Shown here piece by piece: positions 14,483 through 17,400 of a stretch of DNA of 64,000 bases (position 1 is its first letter; every line of letters starts with the position of its first letter). This stretch comes from Tubulanus polymorphus. Lineage: Eukaryota; Animalia; Nemertea. The translations under genes were made by a program, and so were the position numbers. The stretch lies in contig NC_134031.1 of the NCBI RefSeq assembly GCF_964204645.1, positions 14,619,807 to 14,683,806 of the forward strand. Direction: 5' to 3'. A model generated the notes under the pieces. That model worked only from the letters and a program-made list of their open reading frames with translations, made no database searches and was not told the origin of the DNA.

Positions 14483-17400
14483 TTATTGTTGATGAGCCGG
14501 TCTCGGGTCTGGACCGCATCTACAGTAGAACCAGTTTCTGGGCAAGTCGTATCGAAGAGTTCGCAACTTTCTGACGATCGAAGTTTTCAAATTCACCTGG
14601 GATTTTAAAAAATTAAGTAGTCATTTTTGGCTGCTCAATCTTGAAGACATTTTGAATCCTGTAAATCATGACATTGCATAAGCTTACCAGGATGTTTTGT
14701 GAGTTTGGTTTGAAACTTGCGGTTACCCATTCTAACATGAGCACCACTAACCCAACCCCTGTGCCGATATAGATTATCCAAAATATGCCCCATAAAGCGT
14801 CCATTTGAACCTCTTGGGTCTCGCTAACTCCGGGCTTCGTCGCAGTTTTCGAACAATTTGCTGTTTGATAAAGCCTTATAAAACAAAAAACAAACTCCTA
14901 AGTTTAAGCGACGCCATAAGCTTAGATTATCCCTGGGCAGTTTCACGAAAGTTAAACTCAAATTTTTGGTGTAATTGCCATTGGTTACTTCATGTTTTCA
15001 ATGCGGACAACAATTCAAACTTAACCGTTTTAGGCTTAACATTTTCCTGAAACTGGGCCCTGGTAATGAGGAGATTAAATTCCACAATATCGTCGTTTGA
15101 AGTATGACGCCACTTTTCAAAATATAAGATAATAAACTACTTTGCACTCACTTTGAGTCAAACTAATCGTCGGAAATAGCTGTGCCCCCCGCACACTGAG
15201 TGAGATCATGACTCGCAACACTATGGAGCTGGGACCATAAGTTACGACTACCATATTGAAGCAATCATGGTATTACGAAAGCTACAACATTTCTAAATAT
15301 TTCCACGGAATATTTTGCCCTACCCCAACTCAGAATCTCATCTCAGGTTCTTAACTCACCATTTATTATCCAAAATATCTATGAATCCCGATTCACGATA
15401 TTGTAGAATTTTAATTGATAATTCCTCGGCGTAAATGGAACCTTTTGGAAGCGGGAATCCATAACCGACTCCAGCAAAACCATTCTCTACAACCTGCAGA
15501 CGACATCTCTGACCTTTAACAACGAGAAACAATGAATAATACTGACTTAAAAATGAGTATTTTTTTCTAATATCAAAATCATTATAATTTCAATAAATGG
15601 ACAGATTGTACTTCGTTCCGGGTTAACTGATTTTAGACACTACGAAAGATATTACGAGTTTTCACGTCCAGTGCAAAGAGTAGCTTCATCAAATTTCGAC
15701 CCTTTCAAAGTGTATTTTATTTACCTTTCCAATAATTGAGAACTGGTAGATCGTACAAGAACGCGAAGCTGCCGTTTTGTTGGTCCGTGTAAGCAATCGC
15801 TTCTGCCGTGTTTGAAAAGTATAATCCCTCCTTGCGCATGTTGTCTCCTATTTGTCTGACGGAGGAAATATATATATATATATCGAATGAAAAGATAAAC
15901 TGCTTTAAAACCACAAACATTGTCTGTATTCTATCTGTTTGTATTCTAAATTTCGTACGTAATAATTATGACAATAGACTTTATTTCAAAATAGCGATAT
16001 TTTCTAGAATATAACACTAAAAAGTATGTGTAAAAATAGGTTGTCATGTGGAACTGGTGGCGGGAGCGCAGAGCCGTCGGAAGGAATTTTTCAGTGGCGA
16101 GGCTTATTTCTGAAGGGTGGTTCCGACGTTCCCCTGTTCCGACGACCCTGGAGTGTAGCCTTTACCTGTACGGATATCTTTCTGCCGTGTCGAAGAATAG
16201 ATGAGGTTGTGAATCGTTGACAGTGCTGTATTTGATATCAGTTCGTCTCATTAGATCATCGATTGAGTGAATCGTTTCCGGTGAAGATTTTATCGTGAGA
16301 AATGCGGCTAAATTAGCCGTATAAGTAGCTGTTATAATCAGTGTACCGAACCACCAGGCAGATGCAGCTACCCGACCTGTGAAATATGATAATCACTGTA
16401 ATCATAAATCACCAGACAGGTGCAGCTACTCGGCCTGAGGTAGCTTCAGATAGCCTACTTGAGGTAGCTTCACGTAGCCTATCTGAGGAAGCTTCACGTA
16501 GCTTATCTGAGGAAGCTTCACGTAGCCTCTCTGAGATAGCTGCACGTAGCTTATCCGAGGAAGCTTCATGTAGCCTATTGTTTCATATGTTTAAAAACTG
16601 TAACGACCACTTGGGGGTCAAATTCACGAACACTTAGTTTGGATATCAATATATGTATATATATATATATATATATATATATATATATATATATATATAT
16701 ATATATATATATATATATATATATATATATATATATATATATATATATATATATATATATATATATATATATCAGACCACGACGAGTACCAGCGCGAGAC
16801 ACTCACCTGACCACGAGTCTGGGTGCGGGTTAACGCCTTGTTGTAAATAACAACCAGCCGTCCAGAAAAAACTATTGAACAAACTGTGAACATGTTTCTC
16901 TTTGTTCCAGTGAAATATCTCCCATTCGTCGACCTCGCCATCCTCGTTAGTATCCATGACGTCATCGTCAGGGTCGAAAAATCCCAGTTGTACTTTACGA
17001 CCTGGAACACGATTATATATCCTGCTGATAATGTATCAAATCCCGCGATTGGTGGGAATTGTTTTATATAATGGGTTTAAGCACTATCAGTATTGCATTG
17101 AATTTGGAATCAGTGGTTCCTGATCCGAAATTGATTTAGAGACTATTGTTATCAAAGAATGAATAATGAATGTTCTTGAATATTCACCACATCTGATTGG
17201 TCACGACAGCCGAATGGTCACTACACCGACCAGACTAACTTACAAACTTTGTCATTCACGACTGGTCTATGGTCTAGTTGTCAGCATGCTTGGCCGGTAC
17301 GCTGGGGGAAGCAGGTTCGAGTCCCCAGATAGGTGGAGCGGGTTAGTGCTATGTAGGACCTAGGTTTGCGCTCGAGGATTTTTTTGGTGGAGAATTTACC

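Follow-up and report, generated by a model that had tools for sequence, protein, structure and literature searches.

Does a glutamate-receptor channel carry a calcium sensor of its own? The question is raised by a 64,000-nucleotide stretch of the genome of the nemertean Tubulanus polymorphus (NCBI RefSeq assembly GCF_964204645.1, contig NC_134031.1, positions 14,619,807 to 14,683,806 of the forward strand), which was analysed as a whole and is called the window below; all positions given without further reference are counted from its first letter. The window holds a gene for an ionotropic glutamate receptor (iGluR), and the linker between the M1 and M2 segments of the encoded channel includes twelve residues that read like the Ca2+-binding loop of an EF-hand. 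An earlier note, made from the letters of the sequence alone, had pointed this out, and the observation is confirmed: the iGluR linker exon encodes an EF-hand-like loop. To our mind the balance of the evidence tilts towards the 12-mer being a genuine EF-hand-type Ca2+-binding loop that selection has kept in the M1-M2 linker of a single group of orthologous animal iGluRs. A channel so equipped would probably sense calcium itself, and not through a helper protein.

The loop and its conservation

The loop lies on the minus strand within an exon of 195 nucleotides that is in phase 1 at both ends and whose first in-frame residue is R (16999-16997). The features on which the argument turns are the following.

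16807..17001, minus strand: exon for the cytoplasmic M1-M2 linker, the M2 pore helix and the selectivity-filter stretch (splice sites, relatives, GluK2 homology, match to the relative L012)
16955..16957, minus strand: invariant Met at loop position -1 (kept in 15/15 distinct sequences)
16916..16954, minus strand: EF-hand-like 12-residue loop plus I13 (PS00018 match, conservation, Pfam EF-hand_6 in register at 12.1 bits)
16889..16927, minus strand: predicted exiting helix, exon residues 25-37 (AlphaFold2, predicted local distance difference test score (pLDDT) about 64-73; same helix in the relative L003)

Codons 16954-16916, with D1 at 16954-16952, E12 at 16921-16919 and I13 at 16918-16916, match the PROSITE EF-hand pattern PS00018 in full when it is applied as a regular expression, just as the earlier note had claimed. 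The match supplies oxygen ligands at positions 1, 3, 5, 9 and 12, a glycine hinge at position 6 and a hydrophobic residue at position 8. It is the only PS00018 match in the six frames of the window; the 37-residue linker matches the pattern in 0.13% of shuffles, and a degenerate motif pattern of 33 places was found once in the whole 268-Mb genome.

Whether such a loop is retained across orthologs was a check that the earlier note had proposed. Relatives were sought by an exhaustive phmmer search, two profile word searches and a scan of JGI metagenomes; these searches, like the folds and alignments reported below, were made exon by exon. The phmmer search with the exon against 1.84 billion representative proteins yielded four true relatives, all of them short open reading frame (ORF) fragments. 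Together the searches brought the number of distinct subfamily sequences to 15 including that of the window, the 14 relatives coming from at least eleven different samples or assemblies in ENA, Logan and JGI, with guanine-cytosine contents of 32-57% and introns ranging from about 60 bp to kilobases.

The motif is present in all 15 distinct sequences, and its absence from orthologs, which the earlier note had named as a refutation, is not what the comparison shows. Each keeps M(-1), D1, N3, D5, G6, D9, W11, E12, W16 and K20, so that all five acidic or amide ligands of the 12-residue loop and its glycine hinge are invariant, and position 8 is V or I throughout. The resulting family consensus, D-[KTMAIR]-N-[DEA]-D-G-[TEKS]-[VI]-D-[YE]-W-E, resembles the textbook sites III and IV of troponin C. 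In an alignment of 12 sequences, all but one of the seven canonical positions (1, 3, 5, 6, 8, 9, 12) are among the 12 invariant columns out of 38 in the linker (hypergeometric P = 0.002), and mean entropy is 0.12 bits at the canonical positions versus 1.19 bits; the variable loop and flank positions (2, 4, 7, 13-15 and 17-18) have entropies of 1.3-2.5 bits in the same alignment. The ligand positions are thus fixed while the rest of the linker has diverged.

The codons of the invariant residues differ at their third positions, and the relatives are only 62-78% identical in their DNA (88% for the closest pair); the identity is therefore maintained at the level of the protein. As far as aligned sequences can tell, this pattern is that of purifying selection. 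The window protein is the outlier of the set, with 37-46% identity to its relatives. Compared with them, its 12-mer is identical at 7-10 of 12 positions (58-83%), while identity falls to 23-36% in the remaining linker and to 35-46% in M2 and filter combined, which makes the loop the best-conserved part of the exon.

Since the relatives might have been picked for the motif itself, circularity was checked with 35 fetched iGluR fragments that extend at least 40 residues before the pore tip. The motif occurs in 11/11 fragments with the pore signature of the subfamily and in 0/24 fragments of the kainate/AMPA type, so the selection of sequences was not circular, and sequence comparison places the motif in one iGluR subfamily alone. 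Among the 1.84 billion representatives searched there was no full-length annotated protein with the loop, which suggests either that the subfamily belongs to lineages whose proteomes have yet to be annotated or that gene models overlook the exon. Three further searches were less telling. A phmmer search of the PDB with the 64-residue exon alone returned nothing at E <= 1, the query being too short; a word-index search with the exon alone gave no candidate where alignment-based searches succeeded; and an ESM Atlas look-up of P0001, a protein of the subfamily, retrieved only generic Lig_chan clusters at 0.85.

The T. polymorphus genome itself contains one paralogous exon match (L002, at G000:C7:4984106-4987240, with the exon at locus positions 1501-1635). 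L002 is an iGluR with an LLGAGG pore tip in place of the Q/R-site motif, and its linker is shorter by 11 residues. Of the loop only the second half is present (D5, I8, D9, W11, D12, W16 and EK), D1, N3 and G6 being absent; these residues give it the look of an EF-hand-like loop in a degenerate or ancestral state.

Reading frame, pore and agonist site

The linker exon belongs to a minus-strand, multi-exon iGluR gene that runs from about 24046 to 14724 and is described as complete. Its exon ORFs match Pfam ANF_receptor, Lig_chan-Glu_bd and Lig_chan in the canonical order, giving the full iGluR domain set (amino-terminal domain (ATD), S1, M1, the M1-M2 linker with M2, M3, S2 and M4), and 15 exon-level tblastn matches are collinear with the compact orthologue L012. 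Besides the linker exon, three features of the gene are of note here.

14724..24046 (approximate outer limits of homologous exons), minus strand: whole iGluR gene (Pfam matches of exon ORFs, collinearity with L012)
17522..17765, minus strand: exon for the end of S1 and for M1, ending SPFGHH plus G in phase 1 (same donor position and phase in L003-L006)
16166..16376, minus strand: M3 exon with the TYTANLAAF gate motif and the start of S2 (Pfam Lig_chan 3.3e-15; kainate and AMPA receptors in the PDB at E about 2e-13)

The splice model of the linker exon is based on comparison with related loci. The M1 exon ends CAT CAC G, followed by intronic gt, at 17522, and both the position and the phase of this donor are identical in the four relatives L003-L006, where the exon ends CAC/CAT-CAC/TAC/TAT-G before gt, after SP[FY]GH[HY]. 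In the window, the linker exon is entered through the acceptor ccAG (17003-17002), with exonic G at 17001, and left through TCAG followed by GTgagt, its last base being 16807; L003-L006 likewise start the exon with G after cag, and three of the four (L004-L006) end it with TCAG before gt. L003 and L012 have no intron between the linker exon and M3, and each reads as a single ORF from the motif through M2 to the YTANLAAF gate. The next window exon, starting at 16376, carries the frame on into the TYTANLAAF gate, the counterpart of the SYTANLAAF gate of iGluRs. Because the intron phases are conserved and the intron-less relatives L003 and L012 read through, the frame of the linker exon is fixed: splicing in another frame, which the earlier note had named as a way in which its proposal could fail, is not what the comparison points to, and the frame that begins with R at 16999-16997 reproduces the earlier peptide exactly.

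The position of the loop in the channel follows from homology. P0001 spans the linker, M2, M3 and the start of S2, and aligns with GluK2 structures from the start of M2 onwards (E 1e-19), which puts E12 of the loop about 11 residues before M2, one fewer than the approximate count of 12 given earlier. The M1-M2 linker is cytoplasmic by established iGluR topology. The pore itself is marked by two features.

16838..16882, minus strand: M2 pore helix, exon residues 40-54 (AlphaFold2; alignment of the relative P0001 with GluK2 M2)
16841..16843, minus strand: Q/R-site codon CAA for Gln, Q53 of the exon peptide (family alignment, GluK2 alignment of P0001)

The F-E-Q-G of the family stands opposite M-Q-Q-G of GluK2, and the re-entrant M2 accordingly carries LQQG in the window, against FEQG or FQQG among the relatives. 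The earlier assignment of Gln to the Q/R site (codon 16843-16841) holds up in this alignment. Across the subfamily the site is Glu in 13/14 distinct relatives (FEQG, as in L003, L005-L009 and L012) and Gln in L004 and in the window, and never Arg; we predict on this ground that the channel is probably permeable to Ca2+. Among AMPA/kainate-like iGluRs, acidic residues ringing the pore tip are unusual, and they may confer strong divalent selectivity or block.

The agonist site differs as well. The Ser-Thr pair that receives the distal carboxylate of the agonist (DGST in GluK/GluA) is Gln-Pro in the window exon 16166-16376 and Q-I, D-V, G-V or H-V in the relatives L003, L004, L005 and L012; such pairs resemble those of glycine-type sites, such as S-V in GluN1. 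Judged by these residues, the natural agonist may be something other than glutamate. Exon-level PDB searches, with single exons as queries, gave near-equal scores for the ligand-binding domains of kainate, AMPA, NMDA and ctenophore receptors, and scores at this level assign the gene to none of the kainate, AMPA and NMDA classes.

Several observations concern gene architecture and surroundings. The intron between the linker/M2 and M3 exons has been lost in two relatives with compact genomes, L003 (Logan SRR26459407) and L012/L013 (Logan SRR23372228, SRR31984831); in L012 the whole receptor gene fits within about 3.5 kb, with introns of about 50-100 bp. In L006, the intron downstream of the linker exon holds a minisatellite (L006:10900-12800) of about 20 or more copies of units of about 73 bp, each made up of the 3' end of the linker exon (...SLFEQGGERHPKSWSG in its coding part) and the start of the intron. 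Within the window, long (TA)n microsatellites occupy introns at 16656-16772 and 21566-21750, both inside the receptor gene. Just downstream of the gene, on the same strand, lies an intron-less ORF of 345 residues for a rhodopsin-type G-protein-coupled receptor (11248-12282, minus strand; Pfam 7TM_GPCR_Srw 1.2e-13, 7tm_1 1.5e-09). The gene is flanked on both sides by short open frames derived from tandem repeats (13990-14400 and 24100-24300, both on the minus strand), one set consisting of a repeated ...FGAPKQRKF... unit and the other of repeats of a different unit; these are probably dispersed or tandem repeats, not coding sequence.

The loop as an EF-hand and other explanations for it

How far does the likeness to an EF-hand extend? 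Every member of the subfamily matches Pfam EF-hand_5, EF-hand_6, EF-hand_STIM1 or, in the case of P0009, the EF-hand-like SAPC2_N over the motif, at 11.7-16.3 bits; the matches to EF-hand_5, EF-hand_6 and EF-hand_STIM1 are in the register of the EF-loop, and EF-hand_STIM1 matched three relatives at E 0.011-0.05. AlphaFold2, given the window exon and the family alignment, returned a model with a mean pLDDT of 64 and helices at residues 10-13, 25-37 and, for M2, 40-54. An independent model of L003 (pLDDT 57) repeats the exiting helix and M2 and has strands before the loop. In both, the exiting (F) helix starts at loop position 10 (residues 25-37 in the window, 24-36 in L003), at a low to moderate confidence of pLDDT 57-73. 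This helix holds the invariant W16 and K20, and position 19 is E in 14/15 sequences and D in one. The designation "canonical EF-hand" in the earlier note hence stands in part: the loop and the exiting helix are borne out, the latter at the confidence just given, while an entering helix is unsupported and the Pfam scores fall below their gathering thresholds. The note's own caveat that the entering helix was not evident proved apt. EF-hand status is a matter of the loop plus its exiting helix, and the safest name that the sequence allows is an EF-hand-like (DxNxDG...E) putative Ca2+-binding loop with an exiting helix.

A number of points weigh against a Ca2+ sensor. The entering side offers no canonical helix, since AlphaFold gives four helical residues in the window and strand in L003 (pLDDT 57-64), and positions -4, -5 and -8 are not hydrophobic in most members, M(-1) being the only conserved residue there. 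EF-hands normally function as pairs; each subunit here has a single loop, with no second PS00018 match in the linker or the window. The Pfam gathering scores of 25-32 bits are not reached, the window loop scoring 12.1 bits (E 0.18). Foldseek against the PDB with the low-confidence exon model found no match at E <= 0.001, an uninformative outcome for such a model. All 14 relatives are exon-level fragments from unannotated assemblies, and the run search for the locus returned no RNA run among its matches, so that the use of the exon rests on comparison. Acidic M1-M2 linkers are moreover common in iGluRs (GluA2 and GluN1 among them), and for this reason the acidic loop may serve another purpose.

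That last thought leads to the most substantial of the alternatives, which we consider a real possibility though a somewhat doubtful one: the loop could be conserved for a role other than Ca2+ sensing. It might contribute to a ring of acidic residues in the cytoplasmic vestibule, which would gather permeant cations or adjust block by polyamines or Mg2+; it might be a constitutive Mg2+ or structural site; or it might, with W11 and W16, present a surface on which the membrane interface, an auxiliary protein or a scaffold protein docks. The residues W11, W16 and K20, none of them ligands, are as conserved as the ligands, as is, nearly, E19 with its one D; together with the non-canonical entering helix, the missing partner EF-hand and the sub-threshold Pfam scores, this speaks for such a role. 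So does L002, which retains D5, I8, D9, W11, D12, W16 and EK without D1, N3 and G6, and from which it follows that part of the constraint is independent of a complete Ca2+ site. Yet G6 and N3 never vary and the 1-3-5-9-12 spacing is exact, which is the signature of Ca2+ coordination, and a mere acidic ring would allow D, E and N to be exchanged and the length to change, neither of which is seen in any of the 15 sequences.

Two simpler explanations are far less probable. PS00018 is a short and permissive pattern, the linker is rich in D and E, and very many windows were scanned, among which some chance matches are expected; a fortuitous match without specific function is nonetheless very improbable, given that the ligand positions are kept in 14/14 relatives although synonymous sites are saturated and the linker has otherwise diverged, and that shuffled linkers so seldom match. 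The conservation across relatives effectively refutes it. Just as improbable is an artefact of the gene model, in which the exon would go unused, be read in another frame or belong to a pseudogene. The two sequencing runs that match the locus (X1 and X2) leave room for it, both being DNA, as judged from contigs that cover the introns, with no joints and no variants; so does an alternative in-frame donor, GAGG before gtgagg, nine bases downstream of 17522, which would add three residues far from the motif. Against it stand the identical intron positions and phases in four relatives, the intron-less passage into M3 in L003 and L012, exons that are all open and collinear with those of L012, and the pattern of purifying selection.

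Possible calcium feedback and what the loop would mean

Returning to the reading that we favour, in which the loop is an EF-hand-type Ca2+ sensor, we can sketch how it might act. Ca2+ would pass through the pore, and either this entering Ca2+ or cytosolic Ca2+ would occupy up to four loops at the inner mouth. The predicted exiting helix begins at position 10 of each loop and is followed, some two residues on, by the M2 pore helix, so a change in the loop could be relayed through the exiting helix to M2 and alter gating, conductance or block. The result would be Ca2+ feedback without calmodulin. In its fullest form, which we put forward tentatively and with less assurance than the identity of the loop, the proposal extends to an entire group of orthologous animal iGluRs, each of which would have a Ca2+ sensor of its own, one loop per subunit and four round the inner pore mouth, with an exiting helix mechanically continuous with M2, such that permeating Ca2+ would directly inactivate, potentiate or re-tune the channel without calmodulin.

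The closest known relatives are the kainate/AMPA-type iGluRs (GluK2, PDB 5KUF; GluA2, PDB 3KG2), which share the succession of ATD, S1, M1, re-entrant M2, M3 with its YTANLAAF gate, S2 and M4. Over the M2-M3 part no PDB sequences match better (E 1e-19 with P0001 as query, 2e-13 with the M3 exon of the window). As in the window, their linker lies on the cytoplasmic face and Q is found at the Q/R site. Their linker, of the SPYEW...NPHPC...ENxF type, differs in that 24/24 fragments examined have no EF-hand pattern; the window linker, which contains the loop, exceeds theirs by about 15 residues.

NMDA receptors undergo Ca2+-dependent inactivation through calmodulin bound to the C0 region of GluN1. 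The likeness to the proposed loop is that Ca2+, once inside, acts back from the cytoplasmic face on the channel that admitted it. The sensor there, however, is a separate protein with four EF-hands that sits on the C-terminal tail, whereas in the window it would be one EF-hand-like loop within the subunit, directly before the pore helix. To our knowledge, Ca2+ feedback in every characterised iGluR works through separate proteins (calmodulin, CaMKII, calcineurin).

Outside this family, intrinsic EF-hands occur in TPC1 (cytosolic linker), in polycystin-2 (C-terminal tail), in the C-terminal EF-hand-like domains of Nav and Cav channels and in the luminal EF-hand of STIM1. In all of these, as would be the case in the window protein, the loop for Ca2+ binding is built into the polypeptide of the channel or of its activator; they belong, however, to other superfamilies, and their EF-hands are paired or housed in separate globular domains, unlike a single loop fused to a pore helix. 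That a loop might bind Ca2+ without a canonical entering helix, as suggested for the window, finds a parallel in the DxDxDG-type Ca2+-binding loops outside classical helix-loop-helix EF-hands that Rigden and Galperin reportedly described in 2004. The same chemistry can operate there without an entering helix, although the examples are mostly extracellular or bacterial structural sites and not parts of ion-channel pores.

A full-text literature search with EF-hand and iGluR terms found, within the literature searched, no paper on an EF-hand in an iGluR linker. Other channel families are already known to have intrinsic EF-hands; a subfamily of iGluRs that bears an EF-hand-like loop of its own is thus apparently undescribed. 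If the proposal is true, Ca2+-dependent gating would for the first time be intrinsic to a ligand-gated glutamate-receptor channel, and a sensor placed in the M1-M2 linker beside the pore helix would amount to a new regulatory design for the channel superfamily. It would offer a compact natural model for how the conformation of a cytoplasmic linker is transmitted to M2 and the selectivity filter, and possibly a template for engineered Ca2+-gated or Ca2+-reporting glutamate receptors. The absence of the subfamily from the annotated proteomes searched is a further sign that poorly sampled invertebrate lineages hold undescribed variants of such channels.

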